Assembly (NCBI GenBank): GCA_010909165.1
Contig: MU008154.1
Coordinates: 496,001-560,000 of the forward strand
Length of the DNA stretch: 64,000 nt
Reading direction: 5' to 3'
Source: Anthoceros angustus
Lineage: Eukaryota > Plantae > Anthocerotophyta
Positions within the stretch are counted from its first letter, which is position 1; each line of letters starts with the position of its first letter. Shown in pieces: positions 27,475 to 60,020 of the stretch. Position numbers and translations under genes: made by a program. The notes under the pieces were generated by a model, which saw only the letters and a program-made list of their open reading frames with translations, made no database searches and was not told where the DNA came from.

Positions 27475-30400
27475 TCATTTCTTCAAATTGGTACGCGCCA
27501 GAATACGCTTCCCATAAGGACTACTTCGCAATGCTGGGAGATGAGGACGGATGGCCTCAACAATAACTGCATGGAGAGATCCCTGTCGGCAAACCAACAA
27601 CCGTTTTTGTGACAGCAATTCCAAACCAAAATCATCTCCTTGCAGGAAGGTGACACAAGCTTAGTTCTCACATCGAAGAAAAACAACCTGGACTTCACCT
27701 GCAGTTTAGGCCAAGCATCGACGTACCTTTGCTACTTGAAGTGCAGATTGAATAACATAATTGGCGTAAGGGTCTTGGAGTAACTGCCCTAGTCGGGAGC
27801 TTCCCACAAGCTCCCGAACTATGCAAGCCCTGTTTTCCTCTCCAGCCAGCTTGAGACACTTCTCCACAACGTTGCTGCTAAATTTCTGGGCTGCCAGGTA
27901 AGGGTAATTTCCCTCCAGCCGCACCATGACTTCCATTGAAGCCCACGACGTACCAAGGTCAAGAATATACTGGACAACATAGTTGCTGCCACCACATCAC
28001 AAGTCAGTCAGTCAACCACCAAACATCACAACAGACCATTGATGACCCAATGTATTAGCATTGATCATTGATAACGTATCTTATTGGTAGAATACCCGGT
28101 CAAACAGCAAACCTGAGTACCAAGTTAGTTCAGAAACTAACAGCATCAAAGCACCAAAAAAAAGGGGGCTCCAATGGTACCATACCCAAATGGATCTTGT
28201 GACAGAATCAATGCATTAGCAGCAATTTCAGAAACTAAGCGCTGCTTGTGCACACCCCTTGCAAAATCGACACAGCGCTGAAGGACACAGCATCCATGGC
28301 GATGCGTGGCAATTTCCACACAGTGCGTAGCCGCAGCCTCAAAAATGAACTGCACCCACAAAAACAACAAAACTTTCAGGTACAAATACAGGGAAGCCAG
28401 AAGAGAACAATCCTAAAAGAACCACTAGCATGTTGGAGTGCACTACAGCAGTCCTGTAGCACAAAATTGCACTCAGTTGCATGCAGTTTCAGGTGACACA
28501 CTACACCACACTCACCACACTATCTTCGTTGCTGAGGCGCTGCAGACAACGCTGCACCACATGGTTACCATTCAGGTCTTTAATCAGTGTCACAACGCCT
28601 GGCTGCAGAGAGGCTTTGACCATAGCGACTTGCTCAGGAGACTTCAGTGTCTCAATTAACTTCTGCACCGCTCGAGTTCTGCAGGAAACAAATTACAGGC
28701 AAATAAACGTGAGCACATATTCTGAACCAGTCATAGGTTCGTTTCTAGAAAGACACTCAACATCAGCACGAGTAACCAGAGCCAATAATTTACCCATGCA
28801 TATTCAAAGAGATTGTGACCAGTTGACTCCCCTCTGCCACAACAGAGAGAATTGCCATTCTCTGAGTTTCATCGCAAACGTCCAACAACTTCTGTATGAG
28901 ATAATTTCCAAATGGATCTGTCATCAGCTCAATGATATGGTCGATGATCTCCACAAAAATCTTCTGAACATCTTCTGGTCCACCTTCTTCAAACTTCCTC
29001 TGGAGGAACCGACATCCATGCTGATCCTTAGCAATGGAGTAAAACCGGCCTTCCACCTCCTCGAGAGTAGTGTACTTGGATTGCTGCTGCTGTAAATGAT
29101 GGGCAGCACTGATATTTGATACATCAAACTCCAACTGCTGATCCGGAGACACCACAACTCTGGTATGGTTTGTTGCATCAGGAAGGAAAGGACTCGAATG
29201 GACAGGCGATGGAGAGTGATGACCATTCGAATACACTTGTCCATTTGAATGTCCATTCGTCAAAATTTCAGGCCTCTTGCGCACAGAGGCAACAGGTGCT
29301 ACTACTCCAGTTTGCCCATTTCGTGGTCCATTCCTCCGGGAGAGGATCTTCTCAGGCCCAGCTGGTGATCGTGATCGTTCTGTGCTCCCAGAGCTGCTTG
29401 CTCGGACATCCTTCAAAACACCAGATAGTGTCTGAGGCACTCTCACTGAGCCATAGCTTTGTGAAGCTCCTGGATGCAGGAATGGGCAAGCGTCTCCACG
29501 ACTGCAATAGCCCTGTGCATAATATCTGCAAAGATTGCCAACCTGGGAACCAACCTGGGCACGGTCCATCTGATTCAGAGCAGCAGCCACCGTTGCTGAT
29601 GGAGGAAGGTGCGGATGATTCCACACAATTTCGTGGCTCAGTTGGTGATGGTTCAGTTGGTGCTGTTGCTGGCGCTGCTGCTGCTTCAGAAGGGCATGAT
29701 TAGATAAAAGAAAAGGATGGACGGCTGCAGACTGCTGCAAGGATTGTCTGGATGCTGCATTCAAGGGAGACTGAGCCCTGAGAAAGGATGCCTGTCCACC
29801 ATTAGCCTGAGCCTGCAAGCTCGCCATGTAAGCTGCGGTCTCCTGAGCCTGTTGCTGATGGAGGAGGTGCTTCTGGATGATCTGCATCTGTTTCTGCTTC
29901 TCCTCCTGGTCCATTTGAAGTTGCAGTCTATGCGCTTGCTCAATAATCGCATGTCGTTGAAGCACCGTCATCTCATATTCTGGACCCAGCTGCTGCTGCT
30001 GCTGCTGCTGCTGCTGATGCTGATGCTGATGCACAGGAGATTGAGAAGAAAATACTTCATTGCCATTTCCAAAAGAAGCTGGGTAAATACGTGTGGCTTG
30101 CATCGAGGCAGCTGAATAAACATCCAGGTGCTGCTGATGTCGTTGCAGCAGAATCTGGTTTTGCTGCTGGGTCGCAGAACCCATTGCATAAGGATCCAAA
30201 CTCCGCCCTGAAGAAAAATCATCAGACTGTTGCGGGGAGCCTCGCCTAAGCAGCTTCTCAATCATCATCTGTGCAGAAGTCTGAGCAGCAGGTCCAGATG
30301 AGAAATCATCTAAGCTAGAATAAGACCCATTGCCGTAGGAGCCATTACTGAGGGACTCCACACCTCCACTCCGTGAAAGCAGGTCTATGGCAGATTGCTG

Positions 30401-31177
30401 CGACCTGGTAACAAAGGCATCAAGGCTGGAGGCAGATCCATAATCAGGAGCCTTTTGAACATACTGATCAAGATGCGAGTAAAGTCCATTGGAAGCAGGG
30501 GTACCCCTGCCGTTGGAGAGTGTGCCCACCAAGCCATCCGGCATGCCATTATTGCCCACATTCTCGTCATGCATCTGCTGCCGACTGTGACTGGAGACGG
30601 CTATTGCAAAACTGGATGTGGAGCTTGAGCGCTCATCAAAACCGAGGTTCCCAAAAGCCGTAGCCAACGCATGCTCATCCCTCATACGCTGCTGCTGAGA
30701 CTTTGTGGACATAATTAGGTCAGACGTTGCGGACTGCTGCTTGGTCTGAGTCATCGGATGCAAACCCTGTTGATTCTGCACTTGTGACTGCACCTCAAAC
30801 TGCCGCTGCCGCTGCTGTTGTAAGCTGGCCGGAGGACTGTCCAATGTCAAGCCACTGTAGAAGGGGGACAGCGCATTAGATGCTGACTTGGGGGAGCAGG
30901 AGAGGGTAGGAAGATCATTATAAATTGTACGATTGTCCATGGGAGGAGGAAGTTTCTTAGCACCTGAATAAGCACGGTAGAACTCTTCGTAGTGCTCATC
31001 ACAACGAATATCAGTAAAAGGCTTCACAGCAAGCTCAGTCTCCCTGAAAGATACAAAAGGGCTGTCCTCGAGCTGAGAACCGTAAGCTCGTTGCAGTTCT
31101 TCCAAATGGGGAGGAGCAGATGTAGCACGAGGGATTTCACCTAACAGCTGCTCGAGCTCTTCGTCTTCTTGTTCCAT
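27475..31177 (-). CDS. Pumilio/PUF RNA-binding protein with Q-rich N-terminal region, CCCH zinc finger and C-terminal PUM-HD; multi-exon
   Basis: MEQEDEELEQLLGEIPRATSAPP N-terminus; CRYYAQGYCSRGDACPFLH; Puf repeats AKDQHGCRFLQRK, TDPFGNYLIQK, SLNMHGTRAVQK, IKDLNGNHVVQR, ATHRHGCCVLQR, AAQKFSSNVVEK, LQDPYANYVIQS; ends SSPYGKRILARTNLKK* at 27475. Confidence 0.95.
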
Positions 31178-31178
31178 A

Positions 31179-31290
31179 TCACCCAATAGGGCGACCTTTC
31201 AGAAGCAGGAGGTGTCTGACACTAGAACCCCGGCAGCAGAACCCTCCACATGCATAATAATGGAGCCTCATCCGAGAGTTATCATAACAT
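31179..31290 (-). promoter_or_regulatory. Three overlapping upstream ORFs in the PUF 5' leader
   Basis: uORF1 31290-31282 (ML*), uORF2 31285-31268 (MITLG*), uORF3 31271-31179 (30 aa); main ATG at 31177. A TGCAG acceptor at 31316 would place them in the exon. Confidence 0.6.
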
Positions 31291-41774: not shown

Positions 41775-42740
41775 GTGTGCAAGGAGGAAAAAATTTGTAA
41801 ATCGTGCGAAGAACAAATGGTCATGGCCATGTCAAATCAAGACTTCCGTACTCTCAAATCGATCAGCATGAGCTCGACGGCGGCAAAATCGGATTGCGTG
41901 CCACAGCGGAGAATATTGCTGGTGTTGGATCTTAATGGGCTCTTGTTGGAGTCCTTCTGTGTGCGGGAGGAGTTTGAGGGTGTAGAGGGCACAAGCAAGG
42001 CGGTGAAGGTGGGCATGAAGTGGATCATCGTGCGACCCGGGGTAGCAGAGTTCCTGGACTTCTGCTTTGCTAAGTTTGATGTCGGCGTTTGGTCTTGCGC
42101 GAGGGCGCAGAATGTAGAGAAGTACGTTGAATGCATTTTCCCTAGGGGCTGGCGGGAGAAGGTGAAGTTTGTGTGGGGGCAGGATAAGTGCACGCACACC
42201 GGGAGGAAGGTGCCGGGGCATCCTGACAAGCCTTTATTCCTGAAGGAGCTAAGGTACCTGTGGCAAGAGTTCCCATGCTACACGATGAAGAATACACTGA
42301 TGTTGGACGACACGCCCTACAAGTCGTTGTGGAATCCGCCCTACACAGCCGTGTTCCCAGAACCCTACTCGGCGCTGCGACAGGGTGAAAGAGACAACTT
42401 CTTGATGGGGGTGGTGGTGCCGGGGCTTAATAATCTTCTTATTTCTAGTCACACTGTGCAAAGCTTTGTGATGTTGCATCCGCTAGGGCAACCTCCAATT
42501 TCCCCCAATCACCCCGATTGGATATTGTACAAGCAATTGGCAACGGATCCCAAGACAAAGGAGGAGGTAGAGATTTCGACTCACACAAAGCCCTATGTTC
42601 CCCCGCAAAAGAGGAACCTGGCACCAAGACGACTACCCTTTGCTATGAAAAGAAGACCTTCCTTCCAAAAGATTAGGACACAAGCCCCGCTGCCGAAACT
42701 CAAGCCATTGGCAGCCGTTTGGAAGTGTAAAGAGTATTGA
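41775..42740 (+). CDS. Intronless NIF/FCP1-homology (SCP-like HAD) protein, copy 1; first ATG at 41817
   Basis: LLVLDLNGLL, VRPGVAEFLDFCFAKFDVGVWS, KPLFLKELRYLW, NTLMLDDTPYKSLWNPPYTAVFP. Confidence 0.85.
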   Translation: MCKEEKICKSCEEQMVMAMSNQDFRTLKSISMSSTAAKSDCVPQRRILLVLDLNGLLLESFCVREEFEGVEGTSKAVKVGMKWIIVRPGVAEFLDFCFAKFDVGVWSCARAQNVEKYVECIFPRGWREKVKFVWGQDKCTHTGRKVPGHPDKPLFLKELRYLWQEFPCYTMKNTLMLDDTPYKSLWNPPYTAVFPEPYSALRQGERDNFLMGVVVPGLNNLLISSHTVQSFVMLHPLGQPPISPNHPDWILYKQLATDPKTKEEVEISTHTKPYVPPQKRNLAPRRLPFAMKRRPSFQKIRTQAPLPKLKPLAAVWKCKEY

Positions 42741-44939: not shown

Positions 44940-46544
44940 GTGTACGAGGGGGAATTGCGAATCGTGGGAAGAGGGAACGACCATGGCCGTGGAAGATTAA
45001 GGCTTTCGTACTGTAGGAGGTTCTGGCAGATGGTGTGCGGGCACGATGTGCAATGTCCTTGCGGCCAGGGAGCACGTCATCACCATGTACAGTGCGCGGC
45101 GGGTACAGGTCTGCTCCCGCCCATGATGGGGAGCTCAATTGCGGATGGTGGGGCATCGGGAGAGGAGGAGGAAGAAGCGTTTGCGGAGCAGGCGGCGCTC
45201 ACCCTTGAATCGATCAGCATGAGCCCGGCGGCAGCGGAATCGGATTGCAGGCCGCGGCGGAGAATGCTGCTGGTGCTGGATCTGAACGGGCTCCTGCTGG
45301 AGTCCTTCTGTATGTGGAAGGAGTTCCAGGGCGCGGAGGGCGCGAGCAGGGCGGTGAAGGTGGGCAGGAAGTGGATCATCGTGCGGCCCGGGGTGGCGGA
45401 GTTCCTGGACTTCTGCTTCGCCAGGTTCGTTGTCGGGGTTTGGTCCTGCGCGCGGGCGGAGAATGTGGAGAATTACGTTGAATGTATTTTCCCTAGGGGT
45501 TGGCGGGAGGAGGTGGAGTTCGTGTGGGGGCAGGACAAGTGCACGCATACTGGGAGGAAGGTGCCGGGGCATCCTGACAAGCCGCTGTTTCTGAAGGAGC
45601 TGAGGTACTTGTGGCAGGAGTTCCCGTGCTACACGATGATGAACACGCTGATGCTGGACGACACGCCCTACAAGTCGCTGGGGAATCCGCCCTACACGGC
45701 CGTATTCCCGGAACCCTACTCGGCGCTACGGCAGGGTGAGAAAGACGACTTCCTGATGCGGGTGGTGGTGCCGTGGCTGGATAAGCTCTTGGTTTCCAGT
45801 CACACTGTGCAGAACTTTGTGATGTTGAATCCGCTAGGGCAGCCTCCGGTTTCCTCCAGTGACCCTGACTGGATGTTGTACAGGGAGCTGGCAGCGGACA
45901 GGACGCAGGAGGAGGTAGAGATCCCGGCTCCCAGTACGCCCTATGTTCCCCCGCACAGGAGGAACTCGGGTCCGGTTCTGCGGCCAAGGGAGCAGTTCCC
46001 GGTGCCGCCATGGGCGGGGTTGGAGCCGCTGGTGCTGGCTGCGCAGGAGCAGCTTCAGTTTCAGCAGCAGCAGCATCAGCTGCAGCCGCAGATGCAGCAG
46101 CAGGTGCAGTACGGGGATTGGAGGCAGCCGTTGGTTCCCCGTGGGGTGCATTTGCCGTGGTTTGCACATTCCGAGCCACCTTTGTTTCTTCTGCCCCAGG
46201 GTTACGGGCCGGGGTGGGCCGGGGCGGTTGCTGCTGCCCGGGCTGTGGGCTGGATGCCGGAGCCGAGGTTGGCGGGGTTGCCCCCGCCGGAACACTTGCA
46301 GGTGCACCCCGGGCAATGGTACCCACCCTGGGTCCTGCCGCCGATTGAGCATCGGCGGTGGGATGTACCGGAGCATGGAGGAGCAAGGCATGGGTCAGAT
46401 GCTTTCGTCTTCCAGGAGCAGGGCGGGAGAGTTCCGTTTGTGAATGGGTCAGGGTACGGGCCTGTGCGAGGGCGGTTGGAGGAGGTGGGTGATAAGGAGG
46501 AGAGTCATCACCGCTCGCATCCCTATTGGTCTCACAGGAGATGA
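44940..46544 (+). CDS. Intronless NIF/FCP1-homology (SCP-like HAD) protein, copy 2, with a long Q/P/W-rich C-terminal extension; start codon uncertain
   Basis: Same motifs as copy 1 (LDLNGLL, RPGVAEFL, NTLMLDDTPYKS), followed by ~200 aa of low-complexity tail. Confidence 0.85.
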   Translation: MYEGELRIVGRGNDHGRGRLRLSYCRRFWQMVCGHDVQCPCGQGARHHHVQCAAGTGLLPPMMGSSIADGGASGEEEEEAFAEQAALTLESISMSPAAAESDCRPRRRMLLVLDLNGLLLESFCMWKEFQGAEGASRAVKVGRKWIIVRPGVAEFLDFCFARFVVGVWSCARAENVENYVECIFPRGWREEVEFVWGQDKCTHTGRKVPGHPDKPLFLKELRYLWQEFPCYTMMNTLMLDDTPYKSLGNPPYTAVFPEPYSALRQGEKDDFLMRVVVPWLDKLLVSSHTVQNFVMLNPLGQPPVSSSDPDWMLYRELAADRTQEEVEIPAPSTPYVPPHRRNSGPVLRPREQFPVPPWAGLEPLVLAAQEQLQFQQQQHQLQPQMQQQVQYGDWRQPLVPRGVHLPWFAHSEPPLFLLPQGYGPGWAGAVAAARAVGWMPEPRLAGLPPPEHLQVHPGQWYPPWVLPPIEHRRWDVPEHGGARHGSDAFVFQEQGGRVPFVNGSGYGPVRGRLEEVGDKEESHHRSHPYWSHRR

Positions 46545-47977
46545 TGCTGACTATAGGATACTGTGCTGAGCGCGCACTGCACTCCCTTCAAATGCAGGGT
46601 TGGTCGCCACCAATGGGATGACGCGTGGTTGATCTTATATATGCATGTGCGGAAGCTCCTGGGAATGCATTATGATATGTGTTTAGGAGTCTTGATGCGA
46701 GCATGAGTGTAGCTGTGGGGTGGGATAGTTCAGCTGGGTGAAGTCAGTTTTGTATCAGTATAATTCATTGCTAGGCACCACAGGGCCTCGATCCATGTTT
46801 TTGACGGATCTTGGTGCATCTTGGTAGCTTAATTTCCTTTGATCCTTAACACCCTTAAGTGAGGTGTTTGTTTAGAAGCAGAGCTTGCCTTTGCCGTCGT
46901 TCTCATGTCTCTTGAGTGCAGGGTTGTGGGAAGTCCGCTGTTGCTGCTGGATGCCAGCAATATGTATCTCCCTCTCTGCGTGGGTAGCCTGTATTCAAGG
47001 ACTCTTCACGTCATGTCTTACAAAGAAGTACGTTTGTTTGTTCATCGAAGCAGTTGTTACCAATGATTTCCAGTTGACGAGGCAGGGATCGTCTGAGATC
47101 ATAGGTTTAACGAGGGTACCCCCCTGGTTTGGCGATGTGGTACGTAACTCCTTGATTCCGTGACTTTCTTACGTGATAGCACATTGAGAAGCTCACCAAC
47201 TGGTTGTTACCATTTCTCGGAAGTGCGAGAGTGGTGTACTTGTTCTTCTGGTTGACTCCGTCGGGGTCTCTAGCAGGCAGTTCTGCTAACTGCGTACAGT
47301 AGGATGCTTCTCCCCACTGGAAGAACTGGCTGCGTCCATGATCCATCCCTGCACTCCTGGTACCTCGTCCCAGGCCTTCTCATTACATAGTTATTACCTT
47401 CCTCATGCGGAATGAGTTCCAGGAATGCTTCCAACGGTCTAGAAAATCTGTCTCCAGAATCCGGTGGGCCCATTTCTTGTTGTGCATACATATACACATT
47501 GTCAGCTTGCGTGTTCTTGTCCGGTCAGATGCCGACTACTGTGTGCAACTGCTTCTAGTTTTCAGCCAACCAACAAGCCTTGTGGCTGCGTTCGGCAAGC
47601 TTCTACATACTTGTTTGCCTTCCGCTGCAACACTTCCAAAGAGTTGATGACTCTTGTCCTCCATCCTGAAGTCCTGAAGCTGGGCATCCCGTGCTCTGAA
47701 AGTGAATCAAATTTTGAGCCGTTCAATACAAGACGTTGTCCTGGAAGCACACTGCTGCTGGAGAGAGGTCATTGATCGAACCGCAGGGACAGCATCGAAG
47801 ACATCGGGATGGCAAGGCTTGTAGACATCCACGAAGCCTCGGGGCCTGGGTTCAGTGAATTTGCGGACCAGGCAACAAGGTAGGCCAGGCCGCCAATTTC
47901 CTATTCGCTTTTCGTTCTTTCTTTTTCTTCCCTTCCCTTTCCTTCTCTTCTTTTCGGCGAAGGAAAACCGGAGTAGA

Positions 47978-50232
47978 TCACAGAATCGGCTGATCTTCCC
48001 TCGTTGTGTCAACGATCCCCGCTGGGCCGGTCTGCATTTCCAAATCGTGTATGGCACTCGGTTCGTGTCCTCCTCCCAGGCTCAGGATGCTGGCGTCTTG
48101 CAGCATGGCCAGGACTTGGGTCATGGAAGGCCTTGCTGCTTGAGCCTCCTCCAGACATGCCGTTGCCACCTGAGATCGATGCAACAATGCGTTTCAGAAT
48201 GAGGGGAACGGAATAAACAAACAACCCATTTCCAGTGCTACGGAGATGGCAACAGCGAACAAGGACTGAAAGGTTCTGGGTTTCTGACCTTGGCAACAGC
48301 GATGACGGATACCGCGTTCTGCTGCTCTGTGCACACCCGGGGATCCGCGATCTCTTGAACCCGCCCGCCGGCGATGAGCGGGACTGCCCTGGCCGCAAGG
48401 CTTTGTTGCTCCCCAGGCAGATCCGGATCAAAGGGTTTCCTGGAAGTGACCAGTTCCAGCAACACGACGCCGAAGCTGTACACGTCTGAATGCTCACTGG
48501 GCCTGCCGTCGGGGTTTGCTGGATCTGCGTAGCCCAAGGTGCCCTTGGGAGAGGGAAAGCCCACGTCTGCAACCTTGGCGTTGAAGTTCTCGTCCAGCAG
48601 GATGTTCGCAGACTTCACATCGCCGTGGTGGATGGGAGGAGTCACGGGGACGTGGAGACGCTCCAAAGCCTCTGCTACTTGGACGGCGATGCGGAGCCTC
48701 GTGTTCCAGTCTAGCTCACCGGGTCTGTCCACAGAGAGGTGGCGCTCCAGGCTGCCGTTGGGAAGATACTCCCACACCAGGAATCGACCCTGCTGCGGGT
48801 CGATGCAGTATCCCAGCAGCCTGACAAGACCTCGGTGGCTCAGGTTTGAGACCATGGAGACGTGTTGAAGGAAGTGGCCCTGATCATCTTCTGCTTCCTG
48901 GTTAATGTTTCTGGTCCTTTTGATGGCAACAAGGGTGCCATTTTCCAGCACGCCCTGCATCACTTCCCCAGCACTCCCGCGCCCTATCACATTGGTGGGA
49001 GAGAAGAAGTCTGTTGCCTGCTCTAGCTCTGGGTAGGTGAATAATGTCCCGGTCTGCATTGCCATATTCTGTCCTGGGGGGACCACATCCAGGTCTCTGG
49101 TCTTGAACTTCTGTTTTCGGTACTTCTTTCGGTAGACGTAACAAATGGCGATGCACATCATAACAGCTATTATGGGGACAGTAACACCCAATGGAACTGC
49201 ACTCACAATGAGGCAAGGTGCTTCAGGGCCCACATCCTGAGATCAAGAAATCGATACATGTGCATCTTTCATGGAATTCATAGGGTTGTGCATTCAGGAG
49301 AAGGGTAGGCAAGAATCAGTACCTCCCAACGCCTTAGACTTCCCCTTTTTCTTGGACTTCTTCGATTTCTTCGACTTCGACTTCTTCGATTTTTTCGATG
49401 ATGGCTGTGATCTCTTCTTCGGAGAAGGGCCTGTTCCACCAGTGGAAGAACGGCTAAACACGGACCATTGCAGATTTGGAATACTAGGTGGGGGAAACGA
49501 AGGGGAGGTCGAGTAAGATGTCGTTGGAGGTGGTGGATATGGAGAAGGGTCTGCACAGTGATGCCAAATTGGAATGAGATTCACGGACATGTCAGGAAGC
49601 AGAAAGAAATCTACACAGCGCTAGCTGGGAGATGCACTACACACGGCAGGGGCGCACATGGAGTGAAAACGCTTATTTGGAACTTCATTCCCAGCTCACA
49701 GTCGCCATACACCGGGCTACCCAGATACACTTTGTGCCATCCCCCGGAGGTGCTGGGTAGTAGTTTGACTCTTTTGTAATCCTCGGATCCCATTGCATTG
49801 GAGCTCACATTGCAGATACTGAAGGCAGCTGCTGAGGCGAACTCAATGACTGCGTGGGAACCGGGAGAATTGCTGAAATCTGCCACATTCACGGGTTCAA
49901 ACTTGCTTCAGAGCTGAGTGAAAGTTCAGAGCTGCATCCTGGCCTACAGATCAAGTCAGGGAAGAGTTTACAAAGATGTCAAGCTTTCGAGTGCTCTACT
50001 GACCGAGAATGTCACCGCTGTACCAGGGGTCTTCACCGTCCGCCCAATCTTGGTAGAAGAAGATGTTGGGCGGTGGCCCCCATCCGTAACCGTACCCCAC
50101 GGACACTTCCCTTGCCTGAGTATTCGCCAGGAAGTGACCAAGCAAGGAAGCCAAAACCAGAATCCGGAGCAGCCATTGTTGTCTACCACTTGGTCTGAGC
50201 CTCAAAGTTGAATACTCTGCACCCCTCACCAT
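47978..50232 (-). CDS. Receptor-like kinase with signal peptide, phytocyanin/ENODL-like ectodomain, Pro/Ser-rich and Lys-rich stalk, TM and atypical kinase; 5 exons, ~592 aa
   Basis: Exons 50232-50004, 49879-49658, 49550-49323, 49196-48289 and 48169-47978 total 1779 nt with all GT-AG phases consistent. Ectodomain YQDWADGEDPWYSGDILDF...SHAVIEF...FSICN...VYLGSPVYGDCELGMKFQISV; TM VPLGVTVPIIAVMMCIAICYVY; kinase IGRGSAG, VAIK, HGDVKSANILL, GTLGYADP, DVYSFGVVLLEL, RPSMTQV. Confidence 0.8.
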
Positions 50233-51607
50233 CTGGATTGCGGGTACAACCCGAGCTCACGCGTCGAGCTTGGCTATGATCAGGTCATAGCTTGCATTAG
50301 AGGCTCTTCTGTGTGCTTCAAATGCTCTGATTCTTATTTTGAGCTAACAGCTCGACGCTAGTGCTGCACCTTGTACAGCATGTATTTTTGGTGCTGCAAT
50401 GTCATCTATTTTTGGTGAAAGCCTGACCCATTTAACATCGTGCCAGTTGTCACCTGCCATAGAGCATGTCGTTCCATAGCACTGGACAATCAGCCCTATC
50501 CACGAGGAAGGATTTCTTTGATGGGTAGAGATATTCATGCAGCAGTGAAAGTGCAAATGGTTAGTAACACTTATGAGAAGAACACGAAGGACTTTGCACA
50601 GCTTGTAGAGCATGATGTATCCAGGGACGGGCTCTTGCTGTTTGCTGAACCTTTTTGGCTGGTAGTGCGCAAGTTCTCACAAGCGTTCATGTCTTGAGGA
50701 CAGATGAACTGTAGATATGATCAAATTTGGTCTGTGGCTGTCACAGGGTCTTACACTATCGCAGGCTGGGTTGATTAACCTGAGTAAGGATTCAAATTTA
50801 CTTGACGTGGGGCAAGGACCCGCAGTCTTACTTGACTTGGTAAGACGAGTCTTACTTAATCGAGATATGTGAAGACTTTATGTAAAGAAAACAGATCGGA
50901 AATCCCATCCACCCGAGAAAAAAAGGGAACAACCCTCATGAGGGCACCATGCCAAGGAGGATTATCCCACGATGGCTCATGTGGCTTTCACATCGAAGAA
51001 GACAAGCTTCCTCTTCACTGCGCAGTGCACTTTAATGAACTGCATCGGAAACCTAGAATAGAAATACTGCGCGGTTTTTAGGCTCACGGCACCGTTCGTA
51101 ACGAACGGCGTGAACAGTGTAGTTTGGGAATAAGCTTTCATAATGAGTGCCCGAAAAGTACGGAATCGGTCAGCTGTATCCCAGGGTCGGGTTCCAGTGA
51201 GTGAAATAATAAGTTTTATTTATAATGTCATTCTAAGGGAGCATGAGATCATAAGAGATAGGTCTAGCCCTAGACCTACATAAGAAGACGGTGTGTGGTA
51301 TTCTCATATTAGGGTTTTCATTTCTTGGGTGTCCTGTCCCATTTCGTTTGTGGAGAAGAGACTTGCTGGTTTTCTTCATGTGTTATGTTAGAGTTGTTTT
51401 TTTTGTGATTTAGTTTTCTTGGTAGAGACAATCCTCTACCAAGGTCTTGGTATCTTGAAGTTTTGAAGTGCATGGTTTTTTCATTATAGTTTTTTATGAT
51501 ATTTTATGCCCTAAAATGATGAATAGGTTTGCAATCTTGTGTCTTAACTTAGTTCTCCAAGTTCATCAATCTCTGTTCCTAATGCTCTTCTTCAAGAAGA
51601 TAGTTTA

Positions 51608-52783
51608 TTGCTTTATTCTATGATTATAGTTGTTTTAATCACAATTATTGTGGCAGCTAGCGGAGAGGAGATTGAACGGAAGCGATCTAGAATATGGTGG
51701 AAATTCCCTTGTCAAGTAACACTGTGGCGAGATGTTCACATGAGAGCTTGGCAAACCAATGGAGAAGCGGTAAGAGATGCTCAATGGCATTTTGCTTATA
51801 GGATGTCATACCCTAATTTCAGGGCCTTGGTTGACCTTTTCAAGCCATATATTGTGCGTGCTGGGTTAAGAGAACCAGTGAAGTTGCATCATGCTGTTGC
51901 CATGGTGTTGCATCGACTCGCTAGAGGGCTTCCACCACATATTGTTGCAGACATGTATGGAGTTGGGGCATCCACTGTGGTTCAGTACACTTTGTTGGTT
52001 ACTGAAGTTTTAAGCAATCCTGACAAGTTGTTCTCAAGATTTATTTCTTGGCCTCTCCACAACTCGGCAACGGAATATATCTGCAAAGTTTTTGGTTCTC
52101 ACAGGATTACCAAATATGGTTGGAGCAGTAGATGGATCTCATATCAAGTTGGCTAGACAACCAGATACGAAAGACAACCCAGTGGCCTATTGGTGTCGGC
52201 ATGACATTCACTCTGTTGTTTTGCAAGGAATATGTGATTCTGACCAATTATTCCTTGATTTGTCTTGCACTCATCCAGGTGGTGTCCATGATGCTACAAT
52301 TTTACGAGAAAGCAGTGTATGGCAGAAAATGACATAGGGACAAATATTGACATCACCTTCCATGGAAATTTGTGGGACAACTATTACTCCATTTATTGTG
52401 GGTGATTCTGCGTACCCTTTGATGCCTTTTCTTTTGAAAGCTTTTCATGCAGTGGGAAATGATAGAGAAAAGGCTATGTTCAATAGGAGCATGCGGCGTG
52501 GGCGGGTGAAGATAGAAAATGCTCTTGCACTCTTGAAGAGTAGGTGGTGCATGTTGAAAAGCTTGAATGTAAGGTTGAAGTATGCCTCTCAAGTTGTAAT
52601 TGCTTGTTGTGTGTTACATAATTATTGTATCATGTCTGGCGAGGCACATCCCCGTGACGTGAATGTGGATCCATATCCTTTACATGATGGCCAGGAAATG
52701 AATATGTGGGAGGATATGTCATATAGACATTTGTATAACGAAGCGAAAAAGAGGAGACATGCTTTGTTTGATGCTTGGAGAAT
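51608..52783 (+). pseudogene. PIF/Harbinger DDE transposase, frameshifted, with a premature stop and interrupted by an LTR
   Basis: RMSYPNFRAL, VAMVLHRLARG, VGAVDGSHI, PGGVHDATIL, IVGDSAYPL, RVKIENALALLKSRW, VIACCVLHNYC. Frame change at ~52060-52090; TAG at 52335. Confidence 0.92.
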
Positions 52784-53469
52784 TGTGGCGCGACTTTTGC
52801 TGACGGCCAGCCGGGCGCGCACAATCCCGTGTCGTTGTAGGAAGGAGTTCGTTCCCAAGGGAATGACAGACTCCGTTTGCAGCGTTTCAGGCGATTCTCG
52901 TCTTACTTTGCGTCCGTTCAGTCCAACGCTCACACTCCTCAGTTCACGTCTAACTACAAACACCGCACAGGCCCGGTATGGCCAAACGTTTAAGGACCCG
53001 TTCGCGTCCGTTTCGTTCACGTTCGTCTCTCACACCTCTCGTCCGTTGCTCTCTCCACTCACACTACACTTATCAGTCTTAAGGAAAGACGCTGGTTACA
53101 TGCCCGACCTCCTCCGCCTCCTCCGTTCTCGGGCCTCTCGTCCGGCTCAGACGCCCCAAGTCCCTCCGGCTCACACGTTCGGCCGTCATACCGGGCCGCT
53201 GCCTGACGCAGCACGGGTCCCCGCCACCCTTCCCCGCACACACCACAACACGTTAGGTCGTCACGGGACCACGATCAATCCCTCCGAGTCAGTGCTCGTG
53301 AGACTCAGACTCACGTTAGCAAGAAGACACACAAGGTCCGCAAGAACGATCAACACCAAGAGAAAGATGATTTATTGAGGCAGACCCCTCTTATACTACG
53401 CCCGGTCGGCGTCTTTATTACACCCTATTCCGAAATGGCCACCAAGATGCCCTAATCGGCCGCCTACCA
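52784..53469 (-). mobile_element. 3' LTR (~686 bp) of a Ty3/gypsy element
   Basis: TG...CA termini (52784 TGTGGCG; 53468-53469 CA). On the - strand a polypurine tract (gaaggagataggggaggaatagga) directly precedes it, and TATAAG followed by AATAAA lies at ~53395-53370. Confidence 0.7.
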
Positions 53470-56400
53470 TCCTATTCCTCCCCTATCTCCTTCGCGGCGG
53501 TGTGGGAAGGTCCCGGTTCCGCCTTGGGATTGGTGGTCCAATCTCCGTCAGCGATTGCGGGCGCGCAATCGGATGATCCGCGAGGCGGACCCTCCTCTCC
53601 CGGAATCACAGCCGGGTTGGGCTCTTCTCCTTGCGGATGGACGGACCTCCTCCGCCACCTCCTCCGCCTCCCCATGGGTCCCCTCGGTGGGGCCACTATC
53701 TGCTCCCCTAAGTCGAAGGGGCTCCTCATCGCCAAGTCCCGACCTCGAGGTCCGGTCTCGACTCGGGGCTGAACTCAGTCGGCTTATTCAGTCGGCCCGG
53801 TGGGTCCGGCCTCGTCTCGGGGTTCGGACCTCGGGGTCCGAACTTATTCAGTCCGGTCCCAAGCTCCGACTTTCCGTGGACCTCAGATCGCTAGGTCCTC
53901 CTCCCCCGACCCTTGTCTTGGTGGGTTGGCTCCCTTCTGCACCTTCGGGCCCGTCACCCCTTCTCGAGGCGGGTGGTGGTGAACTTACCACAGGGTCCGT
54001 TGCGTCCCGCTCCTCTTGGGGCTCTTCTCCTTGCCGTCGTCTCCAAGCAGGGCCCCTAGGGTCCTGTGGCCGCCCTGCCTTCTTCCCCTCAGGGCCTTCC
54101 GGTCCGTCTATTTGCGGGCGCCGAGAGGCCTCACCGCCTCGGAGCCTGGTAATAGGCAAAGTCCGAATCCACTTGCTGGATTGCCTCTTCCACGTGGAGC
54201 ACCGATACTCCCTTCGCCATAGGTGCTCCGGAGAGCCTGCCCCGCTTGTTGCTCCACCTCCCCGCCAGTTTGATAGGCTGGGCGCTCTATCTCCTTGCGG
54301 TCCTCCATCTCGGCGGCGTCCTGCTCCGCCACCTCCCCGCAGCTGCTCCACCTCCTGCTCCAACTCCTCCGCCTCCCGCCGCCTTGCCCGCCATAGCGCG
54401 TTCCCTTCAAACTTCCTCGGTGGACCGGCTTCTTATGCTTCCGGCCCTCGCCTCTTTGTCCATTACATTAACTCCGCCATCTCCGCTTGACGGCAACACG
54501 CTGATCAGCGCTTCGCCAGCCCTTCTCCATCTCGGCGGCGTCCTGCTCCTGTTCCATCGCCCGTCGGCTCGTCCAGCAGGGAGCCGCTCTATTTCCGTCG
54601 CGTTCGCGACCATGTCCCGCACTACCATTCCTCTCAATGATAGTTTGAGTCAGCCCAAAGTCTCCTTGCGGTCCTCCATCTCCTGCCTTCTTGCTCCACC
54701 TCCGGGAGTCAGGAGATCCTCCATCTCCTTGTCGCGAACTTCTGGCTGGTCGCGCTTGCTCCACCTCCTGCTCCATCTTGAGGCTGGGCGCTCTATCTCG
54801 CTCGAAGTCTGGATTCTCGTTGAGAACTCCTTGTCGCCCGACGCTGCCTTGGAGTTGTAACTCCAAGGTGTCCTTCTTGTCCTCCAACTCCTGCCGCCTC
54901 CCTTCTACCTCCTGCTGCGAGGTCCCGATTTCCGGGTCTTGGCCTCCGGTGTTCTGCGGCTCGTCGTGCTTGCTCATGCCACACTCGGCCTTGATTGGCG
55001 TGGCTCTCTCGGCCGCCTCCCTCCACGGTTCGATCACGCCGATAGTGATCGCGATCGGCCTCCTCCGCCTCCTTGGCCACCTTCACTGAGCCTCTCGCAG
55101 CTCTGGTCGGTCGGCTGCCTCGCGGATCCGCGCCGCTTGCGCCCGGGCCTCCTCGCTTCTGCTGCGCTCGCCCCTCACTGCGGAGGTCCTCCGCTTGGGC
55201 CTCCTTAGCTTCACCTCCTCCGGTGAAGGAATTTAGTCCGGTCCTTGCGGATGGACGGACCTCCCTCTCGCCTCCGCTTCCTTCCTCAATCCGGCCGAGA
55301 GCTTGACCTTCCTTCTGCCTGGGCTCCCTCCAGCCTCACGGAGGAGTACCATGCGCCTCGGGTGGCTTCTACCTCCGGGTCTTGGCCTCCGGTGTTTCTG
55401 CGGCTCGTCGTGCTTGCTCATGCCACACTTTCGGCCTTGATTGGCGTGGCTCTCTCGGCCTCCCTCCACGGTTCCGATCACGCCGATAGTGATCGCGATC
55501 GGCCTTCGCCGGCTCGCCTCCTTGGCCACCTTCACTGAGCCTCTCGGCTTGGCTCTGGTCGGTCGGCTGCCTCGCGGATCCGCGCCCGCTCTGCGCCCGG
55601 GCCTCCTCACTTCTGCTGCGCTCGCCCCCCTGCTGCGAGGTCCTCCGCTTGGGCCTCCTTAACTGCCTTTTGCTCCTCCATGAAGGAATTTAGTCCGGTC
55701 CTTGCGGATGGACGGACCTCCCTCTCGCCTCGGCGTTTCCCTTCCTCAATCCGGCCGAGAGCTTGACCTTCCTTCTGCCTGGGCTCCCTCCAGCCTCACG
55801 GAGGAGTACCATGCGCCTCGGGTGGCTTCTACCTCCTGGGTCTTCTCGGCCATCCATGAGACCCCAGCATACCGTCCATGACGGTAGCTGTGACCCGCCG
55901 TGTTTCTTCCACGGCCACCGTGAGGCTCCCACAAAGTCCGTGAGTGAGCCGATCTCACGGTCCGCCAAGGACCTCCATACTGTCCGAGTAAGTCGGTGGG
56001 TTCTCGGACCTAATCGGGACCCTTAGGTCACGAGTCTTTGCTCCACCTCCCGAGCTTCACCCTCCTTGGCCCTTTTGGCGCGAGCTCCTTCTCGCCCTTT
56101 TCTCCACAGGGCTCGGAGGAGGTGAGGGAGTCAGGAGCAAGCCTTTTGCCCCTTCACAGGGCGGCAGGACCCGGCTCGAGTGCTGCTGCGGTGTCCTCCT
56201 CCTCCACAGGCGTCCCTCGCCCTCCTTCGCTTCCTCACTTCTTGCCACTCAGGTAGGCGGGGTAAGTCTTGGCCGTCCCGAGGTGCAGCGTTGGTAGCCG
56301 TGGTCTTGCGTCTCTTGGCTCCCTCACAGTCGGCGGGGCCTCACCGTGGTTGTGGCCGGTGGCGGGGCCGCTTCTGCTGGGCTCGGTTGGGGCACGGAGG

Positions 56401-57440
56401 AGGGAAGGAATTTCTTCCATACTTCCACAGGTGGTGAGGGGTCCGTTCAGGGCGTATGGAGTCGGAATCCTCGATCGTCCTCCTCCTCCGGGTCCGTTTG
56501 GCCTTGACGATCGGCCTCCTCCCTCGGCGCCCTTGCCGCTCCACTTGGCGGGGCCTCGGTCCTTTCGGGCGCTCGCTCAAGCTCTCCCTCCTTCAGGAGC
56601 TCGAAATGTCCCCATACATGGATCAGGTATGGGGACAGCCCAGATGGCGAGGGCTTCTCGGTCCTGAGCTTGCGGGCCTCCTGACTAAACCGGGCGAAGA
56701 TAATCCTTCCCCAGTCCGCCCTCTTCCCCCGCTGCAGCGCATGCAGGAATACCAACAGGTTATCACCAAGGTGATCCACCTTGGTGAGCAGGTTCCAATG
56801 GACAATGATCCGGGCTACCGCCCTTACTCATTGTCAGGTCGGATATCGACCGTTGGTGGTCCGCGGCCCTGTGCCTCATCACTGCTGGCCCTATCTTCCC
56901 CGCCTTGAGGGGCTCGGCACCACTCCCCTTCTTCCTCCTTTGGGCGGTTGTAGGCGCCTCGGGACCTCAAGGTCCATCGCCTTGGGTCCTCCGGAGGTTC
57001 TTGGACCGCACCTCCTTATTGACCGCCCGGCATCTTCGGGCGAACTCCGGACGGTGACACTATCAACGTCCGCACCATCCGAACACATCCAAATGCCACT
57101 CCTGCACCAATTCTCCGCTTCCTGGGCGGGCCCAAAGTCCGGATAGCGCGGGTCACAATGTTGCGCTCCACGAGGTTCCATGGCTCCCAAACTTCCGCGG
57201 GCTTTTGGGTGCCATCGCCTTCTCCCTTGGTTGTCAGTTGTCGAGACCGGCACGCGCTTCGCCGCTGCACGCTCCAACCTCAGCGGTGAGCCAAGACGCC
57301 CGAGTGTCCCACGAGATACCGCGAGCGGTTGCGGGCGCGAGATCGCGGTGTCTCGAGGTCAGTGAAATGACCTTCCTTCGCCACGCCGGAGTAACCGGGC
57401 AGGGCGCCTCGTCCAGAATCGCCAGAGAGGTCCGCATGGC
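53470..57440 (-). mobile_element. Additional sense-strand ORF region downstream of gypsy pol (fragmented), with internal duplications
   Basis: Fragments DHLGDNLLVFLHALQRGKRADWGRIIF...LSPYLIHVWGHFELL and charged repeats (RAPSLKMEQEVEQ). A ~450-bp tandem duplication has gaaggaatttagtccggtcc at 55226 and 55682. Confidence 0.6.
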
Positions 57441-57799
57441 TTATTCGACCTTACGCCCGCCTTACGCCGCACCTGGTTTTACGCCACGGCATCCGCGGCG
57501 TGAATACTGCTATAACGGCCTCGCAAGGTTACTGCCACAGATGCCTGCCTCCACTGTGGCCCACGTGGCGTCGCCTGGTCGTCCTCACGGCTCAACTTCT
57601 AAGTTACTTTCCTGGCGTACTTATCACCTGGTCACAGGTGGGTCCGGACTTATCCTACCTCGGCCCGCCATAGTAGGTCCGGTACGCCTCACTCCGGTCG
57701 GAGTATACTCCGAGTGCCCCGAGTGCTATCCGTGCTTATTTCCCCTTTTTCGCCTCATTTTATCCTTTGCTCCTACAAAAAACAAAACCCTACCTATTT

Positions 57800-60020
57800 C
57801 TAACCCCCAAGTCCGTAGTCCACATACTCCCTTCTCACCGCTACGCCTCCGCCAACACTAAGCGTGTACTTTTTCACCCGCCACCCGTTCACCCGAGTGG
57901 GCAGCAATTCACCATCCAATTGCCGAAGCTGAACGGACCCATTGGCGTATACCTGTACCACTTGGTAAGGTCCCATCCATCGTAGGTGGAGTTTACCCGG
58001 AAAGTGCATATGTCGGCTGTCGTAAAGGAGGGCCAGATCTCCCTCCTTCACATACTCCTGATTCCGAAGGCGCCTGCCATGCTGATGTTGATTGTATCAC
58101 GCTGTTGCGCCTCTTCCCGGTCCTCCGTATGCTGCACAAACCCTAGCAAACGCTCCAGTTGGCTCTCTTCATCCGTTAAGCGCCTCTCCATCATGACCCG
58201 GAGTGTTGGCACCTCAAACTCTACCGGCATAACGGGTGAGTGCCCATAGGCCAGGTAATACGGAGTTCGCTGCGTGGTTACCTTCTCTGCCGTTCTGAAC
58301 GCCCATAGCGCTGATGGTAGCTTTGTATCCCAGTCGTGCGCATAGTTAACCGTAAGCTTATTGAGGATGCGGCAGATAAGTCCATTGGTCTTCTCCGTCA
58401 GTCCGTTGGCCTTCGGGTTGTAGGGGGCCGTTTTACGATGTGTGATGCCGAAATAGTCCGTCATTGCAGTTATCACATCATTGAGGAAATGGGTTCCCCG
58501 ATCGCTACCACCGCAACGACACCCATACCTTGTGATGATGTTTTCAGAGGAATTTGGCCACCGTGCTCGATCCGTTCTAGTAGCGCTTCCACCCACAGTG
58601 CGATGGTCGTTGCCACCAAAATGTACCGCTTTTGTGTGCCTCGTCGTTGGTATATGGGTCCAAGTCGATGCCCACTTCTCAAAAGGCGCTAGTGCTAGTA
58701 TGGGCACTAACGGCCATTGGGTTGTGGCGTCGGCTTCCGATCCACGACAAGCATCACACTTCTTCACAATTGGTGTGTTTCCCCATACATGGTGGGCCAC
58801 CAAGACTCACCTCCAAGATTTTCTTGGTGGTGACTCACACGATAATGTCCACCACCTAGTCCTTCGTGCATCCCTTTATTACCACCTCCGTCTCACTTTG
58901 TTGGAGGTACCTTCGTTCCATCGGCCCCACCTTAAAGATGCAACCGTTATACAAGAAAGGCGGCGTAGTGCACAAAGGCCCGCCACTGACCCGTTCAGCT
59001 TGGTAGCTCCATCTCCCATAGGTACCGTTCCAACTCCGATAAGAGGGCCGCCCGGCCCGCTCCCTTCTCCGCTTCGCCAGGTCCTGCTCACCTTAGGGTT
59101 TGTCATTGTGCTCCTCTACCTCCTCCTCTATCGCCACCAATTCCTCATCCGGAAGGCGTCCTCGATCCTCGCAGTCCGCTTTAACTGGACAAGAAGTCAG
59201 CGTTTTGGTGTTGCCTTCCTTGCCTAGTCTCCACCTCAAATGTGAACTCCTGTAGCAACAGAATCCACCTCGCAATCCGTCCAGACAGGTCGGCCTTGTT
59301 CACCAAGTGCTTGAGCGCGAAGTGATCAACATAAAACACGAACTCGTTGGGCAGAAGGTAGTGCCTGAATTTCTTAACGGCGTATACCATTCCCAATGCC
59401 TCTCGCTCCGTAGTAGTGTACCTGCTCGGCGTGAGCCGCCTTCCAGTAGTAGATTGGGTGATCCCTCCGTTTATCATCTTTTGGTGAGCACTACTCGATG
59501 GCGGTGACACATCCACATACACATGGAATCGCTTCCCCGGGCCCGTCCTTTGAGTATCGGGGCACCACTGAGTGGTCTGTAGGTCTCTGAATGCCGCCTC
59601 CCTCTCTGGCGTCCAGGTCCATTCTTCCTCCTTCCTGAGTAGCTCTGTTAGCCTGGAGGCCCTCTTTGCAAAATCTTGGATGAAACGCCTATAGTAACCC
59701 ACCATGCCCAGGAATCCCCGTAACTCCTTCAAGTTCGTAGGCGGCTGCAGGGACTGGATGACTTTCACCTTGTCTTGATCCACCTCTATCCCTCTTGCCG
59801 ACACGCGGTGTCCCAACAAGATTCCCTCTGTCATACCGAAGTAGCATTTCTCCGGATGCAGGCACAGTTGAGTCTCCTTACAACGTTCCAAGCACTTCCG
59901 CAGATGTCCAACGTGTTTGTCCTCCTCTCCGTGCACACAGAAGTCGTCCAAGAACACCTCCATGAAGTCCCTCAGAAACTCCCGGAAGACGTTGGTCACC
60001 ATCCGCATAAATTTCTGCAC
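57800..60020 (-). mobile_element. Ty3/gypsy pol remnant (partial RT, RNase H, integrase), non-chromovirus type, frameshifted; gag and 5' LTR absent
   Basis: RT EVFLDDF, YFGMTEGILLGHRVS, FLGMVGYYRRFI; RNase H TTEREALGMVYAVKKFRHYLL, RIARWILLLQEF; integrase SDRGTHF, YNPKANGLTEKTN, GKLHLRWMGPY. Domain order RT-RH-INT; no chromodomain. Confidence 0.93.

Follow-up and report, generated by a model that had tools for sequence, protein, structure and literature searches.

A divergent receptor kinase gene with a probable phytocyanin-like ectodomain in the hornwort Anthoceros angustus

On the minus strand of a 64,000-nt stretch of Anthoceros angustus DNA (the window), coding sequence for a probable phytocyanin-like domain lies upstream of coding sequence for a kinase. 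This raises the question of whether the two form a single receptor gene and, if so, what kind of receptor it encodes. In angiosperms, the copper-less phytocyanins known as ENODLs act as GPI-anchored helpers, and we know of no standard plant receptor-like kinase (RLK) subfamily scheme that includes phytocyanin-type ectodomains. Our analysis indicates that the locus is real and belongs, as a divergent variant, to an RLK class that is rare, already catalogued and uncharacterised. The reading we favour, and hold to be reasonably likely, is a type-I single-pass RLK/Pelle receptor kinase whose ectodomain is one divergent, copper-less, ENODL-type phytocyanin-like (cupredoxin) module, carried on a P/S-rich stalk and a Lys-rich juxtamembrane segment.

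The gene model runs from 50232 to 47978 on the minus strand and is composed of five exons and four introns, all GT..AG, that yield one 592-aa ORF (CDS, 1779 nt). Exon 1 (50004–50232) carries the start codon, a signal-like peptide (aa 1–40) and, as far as a GDIL motif, the first third of the phytocyanin-like domain; it ends in phase 1. Intron 1 (49880–50003, 124 nt, phase 1) lies inside the domain, directly past GDIL. Exon 2 (49658–49879, phase 1 to 1) supplies the remainder of the domain, including H85, C99, S131, D136, C137 and M141, and is followed by intron 2 (49551–49657, 107 nt, phase 1). Exon 3 (49323–49550, phase 1 to 1) encodes a P/S/T-rich, HRGP-like stretch (aa 151–196) and then a Lys-rich stretch (aa 197–226). 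Beyond intron 3 (49197–49322, 126 nt, phase 1), exon 4 (48289–49196) was assigned by Pfam, hydropathy and alignment to a TM helix (aa 227–248), a basic juxtamembrane stretch and the bulk of the kinase domain. Intron 4 (48170–48288, 119 nt, phase 0) precedes exon 5 (47978–48169), which contains kinase subdomain XI (ARPSM), the C-terminal tail and the stop codon (47978–47980).

A preliminary description of this DNA had proposed the same five exons, intron lengths, consistent phases and ORF, and our model reproduces it. It also held that the kinase exon has no suitable start of its own. Indeed, the kinase exon offers no ATG in frame ahead of the TM helix, but M271 or M273 could serve; a separate kinase start at these residues is possible and is not needed for the gene model. 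No paralogue was found within the 64-kb window by tblastn with the ectodomain and the kinase as queries.

Transcript contigs were available from RNA runs of close relatives, with 90–95% identity to the window, whereas the gene was absent from the runs of the window's own strain; the evidence for transcription is that of orthologues or near-paralogues in these relatives, not of this exact copy. A single 2026-nt contig (X5 record 13, 14x depth) joins exons 2–3, 3–4 and 4–5 at the predicted junctions. It thus contains the exon 3–exon 4 splice across 49323/49196, for which the preliminary description had proposed an RNA check. Exon 1 is also represented in the relatives' contigs; in X13, loose ends (49850 and 50006) show it spliced onto exon 2 as predicted, with intron 1 removed. 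Intron 4 is spliced out in contigs from X1, X5 and X13, and the relatives' contigs run beyond the stop codon into the 3′ UTR.

Splicing in the relatives is not uniform. X1 record 4 and X5 record 14 still carry intron 1, X9 record 20 carries intron 2 and X9 record 19 intron 3; the latter two introns are removed in X5 record 13. Retention of intron 3 brings the ORF to a stop at 49294 and would therefore give a secreted, ectodomain-only product. Transcripts ending at this stop, together with a separate kinase transcript, had been named beforehand as the outcome that would speak against a single gene. Of the relatives' contigs, X9 record 19 includes intron 3 and X5 record 13 joins exons 2–5. The retained introns, and Met271 and Met273 as in-frame starts for a kinase-only product, are what could be cited for two separate genes, a secreted phytocyanin-AGP ending at 49294 and an independent cytoplasmic kinase, or for a decaying pseudogene. 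With exons 2–5 joined in one contig at 14x, and introns 1 and 4 spliced in other runs, we reject two separate genes and find this whole family of explanations hardly credible.

The pattern of divergence also speaks against decay. Indels between the relatives and the window measure 3, 4+2, 6, 9 and 1+2 nt and are net in-frame, so that the frame is kept across species; those of 9 nt and 1+2 nt fall in exon 3. Among 34 listed coding differences, 17 are synonymous and 17 non-synonymous, synonymous changes exceeding the neutral expectation. Together, the in-frame indels and this ratio argue for purifying selection. Exon 2 is the least diverged part (7 of 193 nt differ), and the differences in exon 4 are biased to the third codon position, which indicates constraint on the kinase. 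One gene, one transcript and a receptor-kinase architecture are supported by these results.

The protein begins with a hydrophobic signal-like segment, likely cut after residue 40, and continues into a module some 109 aa long that contains the cysteines C99 and C137. The P/S/T-rich and Lys-rich stretches come next, the latter with 14 Lys, and lead into a single TM segment, seen as one hydropathy peak (window starts 222–231), and a basic stop-transfer stretch. Residues 293–556 form the kinase domain. An N-terminal hydrophobic segment, a single TM segment and an RLK-type kinase domain are the features that define RLK/Pelle receptors, and all are present. The proposed order of signal peptide, phytocyanin domain, P/S/T linker, Lys stalk, TM and kinase was reproduced, with the kinase certain and the phytocyanin identity probable. 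With the Lys-rich segment on the extracellular flank of the TM helix, this layout departs from the positive-inside rule.

Whether the extracellular module is a phytocyanin depends on several lines of evidence. Cys99 lies 14 residues past His85, and Cys137 is found in a D-C-x3-M context; the disulfide pair that the preliminary description recognized is therefore in place at the expected spacing. The overall spacing, H-x13-C and S-x4-D-C-x3-M, corresponds to the stellacyanin His...Cys and Cys-x4-His-Cys-x3-Gln/Met pattern. Of the four copper ligands, His85 and Met141 are kept; at the expected positions of the other two, Ser131 stands for Cys and Asp136 for His, also as described before. The complete type-1 copper site of blue-copper phytocyanins (His, Cys, His, Met/Gln) is absent. 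A phase-1 intron is conserved in the PCLD of most phytocyanins (PMC4499708), which agrees with the preliminary description, where such an intron is called typical of these genes. Intron 1 matches it in phase and in lying within the domain.

Language-model comparison with the ESM Atlas gave the same direction for both parts of the domain. The best neighbour of the exon-2 half was a Cu_bind_like cluster (score 0.92, 197 of 256 features shared). The exon-1 half led to phytocyanin clusters (score 0.90, 195 of 256 features), and 93 of its top 100 matches were phytocyanin-fragment clusters.

Profile and pairwise searches returned no such relationship. Pfam hmmscan of the separate exon pieces, which had been suggested for the joined protein, matched the kinase but gave no match to PF02298 (Cu_bind_like) at E ≤ 10 in the exon-1 or exon-2 piece, although exon 2 spans nearly the whole PF02298 model. 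When the exon-2 piece was compared exhaustively by phmmer with 1.84 billion representatives, no phytocyanin and no relative emerged; the six weak matches, all to repeat proteins (Cna_B, SH3_3, dsrm), were judged spurious. Four pieces were searched against the PDB with phmmer. The sole sequence match of the mature N-terminus was stellacyanin 1JER (residues 8–30, N-terminus to N-terminus, E = 1.1). The exon-2 pieces gave nothing or noise, and the 1JER match taken alone is therefore at noise level. AlphaFold modeling of the exon-2 piece alone gave a pLDDT of 43.8, too low for a fold search.

The silence of every HMM and pairwise method would fit an ectodomain that is not a cupredoxin, but an orphan β-rich, two-Cys module whose likeness to the phytocyanin motif is coincidental or convergent. 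Scores of 0.90–0.92 are also reached as first match by 4–10% of shuffled sequences, and recognition of exon 1 falls slightly under the tool's 2300 mark. We nevertheless consider this explanation unlikely: two non-overlapping halves arrive independently at one family, with near-unanimous top-100 lists, the ligands and disulfide cysteines are spaced exactly as in the canonical pattern, and a phase-1 intron lies inside the domain. The ectodomain is thus probably phytocyanin-like, an assignment that is carried by sequence features and clusters, whereas no profile or pairwise sequence method applied to the exon pieces detects it.

Could such a module still bind metal? With coordination through His85, Asp136, Met141 and perhaps Ser131, the receptor would sense copper in the apoplast, a different metal or redox conditions. 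The thiolate that defines a type-1 site is gone with the Cys, however, and ENODLs with similar ligand losses are regarded as copper-less. Two ligands are kept, the replacing Asp and Ser can coordinate metals, and His85 is conserved in a relative's transcript (a loose end). Metal sensing has also been suggested for Cu_bind_like ectodomains by the metaRLK authors (10.1101/2023.12.21.572927). On balance, we find a metal sensor quite improbable for this copy.

The kinase domain is identified securely. Exon 4 matched PK_Tyr_Ser-Thr (PF07714, 2.9e-29) and Pkinase (PF00069, 2.1e-28), and the best matches, among the best 120, are plant RLKs and RLCKs of the WAK-like and PERK/Extensin types with 38–45% identity. 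An alignment with 40 plant kinases placed the GxGxxG motif at 298–303, the β3 Lys at K319, H338 at the αC position, HGD at 417–419, N424 and DVG at 437–439. The catalytic residues K319, D419, N424 and D437, the last of which binds Mg, are present. Other positions are atypical: His338 replaces the αC Glu, HGD replaces HRD (non-RD), DVG replaces DFG and Ala replaces the APE Glu. Compared with every one of the 40 aligned kinases, the activation loop lacks 12 residues. Hence the full RD-kinase set (αC Glu, HRD, DFG, full loop, APE) is not present.

In the kinase tree, the terminal branch is very long, 1.25 changes per site, and lies outside both the WAK-like and the PERK-like groups. The AU test does not reject a position in the WAK-like half (p-AU 0.59), and the tree gives no support for it. 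By its sequence, the kinase falls between WAK-like and PERK/Extensin-like kinases, without placement in either.

These substitutions, together with the long branch, raise a real possibility, though not the one we prefer, that the same protein carries a catalytically dead or nearly dead kinase. It would then act as a scaffold or co-receptor, in pseudokinase-type signalling without substrate phosphorylation of its own. However, the residues diagnostic of pseudokinases, Lys319, Asp419, Asn424 and Asp437, are all intact. The non-RD HGD also occurs in WAK-like matches such as P0001 and P0008, and the third-position bias in exon 4 reflects constraint. In the receptor kinase that we favour, signalling would proceed through an atypical non-RD kinase, probably low in intrinsic activity and in need of a partner kinase or a co-receptor kinase.

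The preliminary description had taken the fusion to define an ectodomain class not known to it among the standard plant RLK subfamilies; the class is, however, already described. RLPredictiOme lists 12 'Plastocyanin-like-RLK' proteins in 80 species (PMC9603095), and Cu_bind_like is catalogued as an RLK ectodomain in the metaRLK preprint (10.1101/2023.12.21.572927). In the ESM Atlas, a Streptophyta cluster of 65 members, of about 573 aa, combines Pkinase with Cu_bind_like. The present protein (592 aa) shares with the catalogued receptors a signal peptide, a phytocyanin-type ectodomain, one TM helix and an RLK/Pelle kinase. Unlike theirs, its domain escapes PF02298, and the likeness is one of architecture, which could reflect either a common origin or independent fusion. 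The Cu_bind_like–kinase cluster was not among the kinase's nearest ESM Atlas clusters. None of the best 120 kinase matches carries PF02298, and BLASTP and phmmer with the ectodomain found no similar ectodomain in them. We found no functional study of phytocyanin-ectodomain RLKs in the literature.

Comparison with better known proteins places the ectodomain and the kinase in different company. ENODLs and phytocyanin-AGPs (PAGs) likewise contain one phytocyanin-like domain in which the copper site is incomplete, with a Cys pair and a phase-1 intron, followed by a P/S/T-rich glycomodule-like region. They are, however, small secreted proteins that end in a C-terminal GPI-anchor signal, in place of which this protein has its linker, Lys-rich at the end, and then the TM helix and kinase. 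Many ENODLs also lose more ligands, whereas His and Met are kept here. PERK/Extensin RLKs resemble it in their proline-rich extracellular stretch and near kinase sequence but have no folded N-terminal module; this module and the absence of placement in the tree led us to reject PERK membership proper. WAK-type RLKs share the HGD, DVKSANILLD and GY.DP kinase motifs; unlike in WAKs, no EGF or GUB_WAK domain was matched by Pfam on the exon pieces.

A further comparison is with FERONIA, a CrRLK1L kinase that works with ENODL14 or LLG co-receptors. An ENODL–FER interaction was reportedly described by Hou and colleagues in 2016, and the preliminary description, which mentioned the association of angiosperm ENODLs with this receptor, called the fusion a Rosetta-stone one. 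The likeness is conceptual, an ENODL-type module that acts at the cell surface together with a receptor kinase. Pfam on the exon pieces gave no malectin-like match and no CrRLK1L kinase appeared among the best 120 kinase matches, and we therefore reject a FERONIA-type receptor. For the same reasons, the fusion does not tie ENODLs specifically to FERONIA, and a Rosetta-stone link to it is weak.

How the favoured receptor might work can be sketched from its parts. The module, presumably devoid of a blue-copper redox centre, would offer a surface to which a peptide, a partner protein or a ligand from the wall could bind, a role also proposed for ENODLs with a GPI anchor. O-glycosylation of the stalk is probable, and stalk and Lys-rich segment together may keep the module within the acidic wall matrix or tethered to it. 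The gene may have arisen when a phytocyanin-AGP-type gene was joined to a WAK/PERK-like kinase gene; the exons for the domain and the linker are bordered throughout by phase-1 junctions, which suggests assembly by exon shuffling.

The natural kinase fusion suggests that a phytocyanin module can act as a sensing head. Its value is tempered, as the architecture is already catalogued and the fold assignment is sequence-based. Less probably than not, phytocyanin-ectodomain RLKs could be a receptor class expanded in the lineage of Anthoceros angustus, with the ENODL-type module as ligand-binding head; this copy would then be fast-evolving, its ectodomain having drifted past profile detection. If true, the class would provide a direct genetic and biochemical handle on the cell-surface binding partners of copper-less phytocyanins. 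Ectodomain pull-downs combined with kinase read-outs in a bryophyte would then be a simple system for finding their ligands.

The receptor-kinase gene was rebuilt by script from the minus-strand sequence (47700–50500 read), and the five-exon GT–AG model of the preliminary description was reproduced with the same intron sizes. Exons 1 to 5 lie on the minus strand at 50232–50004, 49879–49658, 49550–49323, 49196–48289 and 48169–47978. The introns of 124, 107, 126 and 119 nt are all GT..AG, the first three in phase 1 and the fourth in phase 0, and the joined coding sequence of 1779 nt encodes 592 aa with zero internal stops. The gene is real and its structure confirmed. No paralogue of either the ectodomain half or the kinase half was found in the window.

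Hydropathy, composition and, for the kinase, Pfam reproduced the previously described layout. The N-terminus is hydrophobic and could plausibly be cleaved after Ala40. It is followed by a module of ~109 aa, which has exactly two cysteines (C99 and C137) and a single N-glycosylation sequon. Next come a P/S/T-rich linker (13 Pro and 11 Ser per 46 aa) and a Lys-rich stalk (14 Lys per 30 aa), then a single transmembrane (TM) segment at 227–248, trailed by RKKYRKQKFK, and the kinase. The Lys-rich stretch is on the outer side of the TM helix, an unusual placement for such a block. Extracellular arabinogalactan proteins (AGPs) include Lys-rich modules (PMC5266747).

The exact gene sequence was absent from every indexed RNA run, while 5–7% of its 31-mers were present in sixteen runs from two organisms, which fits relatives ~92% identical. 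Four of the sixteen runs (X1, X5, X9 and X13) were aligned to the gene at a likeness cut-off of at least 90%. One transcript contig, X5 record 13 (2026 nt, depth 14), extends from exon 2 (49850–49658) through exons 3, 4 and 5 to beyond the stop, with three joints at the positions of introns 2, 3 and 4; diverged exon ends and AG/AG ambiguity account for a few extra letters at these joints. The predicted splice across 49323/49196, linking ectodomain to kinase, is thus seen in RNA of a relative, not of the window's own copy. In X13, one identical 30-letter sequence forms both the loose end after 49850 and that before 50006, indicating that exons 1 and 2 are spliced at the phase-1 junction of the model. 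This stretch reads D-F-S-N-S-P-D-F-H-S in the relative versus D-F-S-N-S-P-G-S-H-A in the window, so His85 is conserved. Indels between relatives and window are net in-frame (3; 4+2; 6; 9; 1+2 nt), and the 34 listed coding differences divide into 17 synonymous and 17 non-synonymous, against a ratio of ~1 to 3 expected under neutrality. In the relatives' transcript, 7 of 193 nt differ in exon 2 (49658–49850; 3.6%), and 76 of 877 nt, plus 15 gap letters, in the kinase exon (48322–49198; ~9–10%). Of five exon-2 changes listed, four are non-synonymous, clustered at codons 111–126.

The reading of the ectodomain as a phytocyanin held in its language-model neighbours, spacing and phase-1 intron, but not in Pfam, PDB or phmmer searches. 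Neither the exon-1 nor the exon-2 piece matched PF02298 at E ≤ 10, a match that the preliminary description had proposed to seek in the joined protein. By phmmer, exon 2 had no match in the PDB and its halves gave only noise; an exhaustive search with exon 2 over 1.84 billion representatives returned only six spurious repeat-protein matches, with no self match or orthologue. The sole PDB match of the mature N-terminus was cucumber stellacyanin (1JER, residues 8–30), aligned N-terminus to N-terminus at E = 1.1, by itself noise level. The domain is split by intron 1, and AlphaFold gave an unusable model (pLDDT 43.8) for the exon-2 piece alone. In ESM Atlas feature searches, however, the exon-2 piece adjoins Cu_bind_like clusters (score 0.92, 197/256 features in common), and all ten of its best family matches belong to the cupredoxin clan. 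An independent search with the exon-1 piece reached ‘phytocyanin domain (fragment)’ clusters (score 0.90, 195/256 features), on which 93 of the best 100 matches agree. The spacing His85, Cys99, Ser131-x4-Asp136-Cys137-x3-Met141 reproduces the canonical stellacyanin pattern, His...Cys and Cys-x4-His-Cys-x3-Met/Gln. Intron 1 is in phase 1 within the domain, as had been noted, and a conserved intron of this kind is reported for most phytocyanin genes (PMC4499708). On balance, the module is probably phytocyanin-like. Ser131 and Asp136 stand at the expected spacing in place of the Cys and second His copper ligands, in agreement with the earlier reading. If the module is a phytocyanin, a blue-copper centre would therefore be very unlikely and the module would count as ENODL-like.

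The C-terminal half is a kinase, as proposed, with the exon-4 piece matching PK_Tyr_Ser-Thr (2.9e-29) and Pkinase (2.1e-28) in Pfam. Its closest relatives are plant RLK/RLCKs at only 38–45% identity among the best matches listed (proteins of 184–584 aa), where the names include MpRLK-Pelle_Extensin3-like, PERK, WAK/WAK-LRK10L and PBL. Conserved positions were judged from an alignment with 40 of the closest relatives. GxGxxG (298–303), Lys319, the catalytic Asp419, Asn424, Asp437 and the subdomain XI Arg are retained. The αC Glu, present in all others aligned, is His338; HGD replaces HRD (non-RD), DVG replaces DFG, the APE Glu is Ala, and the activation loop lacks 12 residues. A maximum-likelihood tree of 76 rows puts the kinase on a terminal branch of 1.25 changes between the WAK-like and PERK/Extensin-like halves, and no well-supported clade contains it. 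An AU test did not reject grouping with the WAK-like half (p 0.59), and motifs such as HGD, DVKSANILLD and GY.DP lean towards a WAK-like affinity. A Rosetta-stone link to FERONIA finds no support: the kinase does not resemble those of CrRLK1Ls, and a malectin-like domain is missing.

Nor is the ectodomain class new among plant RLKs, as had been supposed. In RLPredictiOme, which covers RLKs from 80 species, 12 are classed as ‘Plastocyanin-like-RLK’ (PMC9603095), the metaRLK preprint (10.1101/2023.12.21.572927) has Cu_bind_like among Pfam domains newly reported in RLK ectodomains, and an ESM Atlas Streptophyta cluster holds 65 proteins of ~573 aa (Pkinase 100%, Cu_bind_like 80%). This cluster is not among the nearest ESM Atlas clusters of the window kinase. 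Full-text literature searches found no functional study of a phytocyanin-ectodomain receptor. The architecture is thus already described, and the gene represents a divergent form of it; RLKs of this build are rare, catalogued but functionally uncharacterised.

Several other features surround the gene. Just downstream, two long plus-strand ORFs in tandem (41775–42740 and 44940–46544) match the NIF (NLI-interacting factor-like/CTD phosphatase) family (9.7e-15 and 2.4e-13), an arrangement that suggests local duplication. An unbroken minus-strand ORF of 798 aa (28790–31186) carries PUF repeats and a CCCH zinc finger; its best database relatives, from Marchantia, Sphagnum, Physcomitrium and Riccia, are only 45–57% identical. 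The protein database contains none of the window's proteins, as would fit a bryophyte-grade lineage absent from it, possibly a hornwort. Block 54001–58000 stands out from its surroundings: it is GC-rich (0.61–0.635), its AT skew is strongly negative (−0.40 to −0.19), and its GC skew is negative too. A plus-strand ORF (52347–53378), some 2 kb upstream of where the receptor-kinase gene starts, matches the PIF/Harbinger-type transposase domain DDE_Tnp_4 (3.7e-10) in its C-terminal part; it is a transposon remnant beside a gene that may derive from exon shuffling.

A phytocyanin-like ectodomain on a real receptor-kinase gene is the probable reading. The protein would be a type-I receptor whose copper-less cupredoxin head, held outward by a glycosylated proline-rich stalk, could bind a wall-derived, peptide or protein partner. 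The basic segment could interact with acidic pectin or lipid, and the signal would pass via the atypical non-RD kinase, probably dependent on a partner kinase. The gene may have originated from a phytocyanin-AGP-type gene shuffled by exons onto a WAK/PERK-like kinase; the phase-1/phase-1 exons of domain end and linker fit exon shuffling.

Alongside fully spliced contigs, relatives also have contigs retaining a single intron: intron 1 (49880–50003) in X1 record 4 and X5 record 14, intron 2 (49551–49657) in X9 record 20, and intron 3 (region 49193–49337) in X9 record 19. Such contigs could reflect pre-mRNA, carried-over DNA or true isoforms. With intron 3 retained, the ORF would end at the 49294 stop, and its product would be a secreted ectodomain that lacks TM segment and kinase; this may be a decoy isoform or just pre-mRNA.
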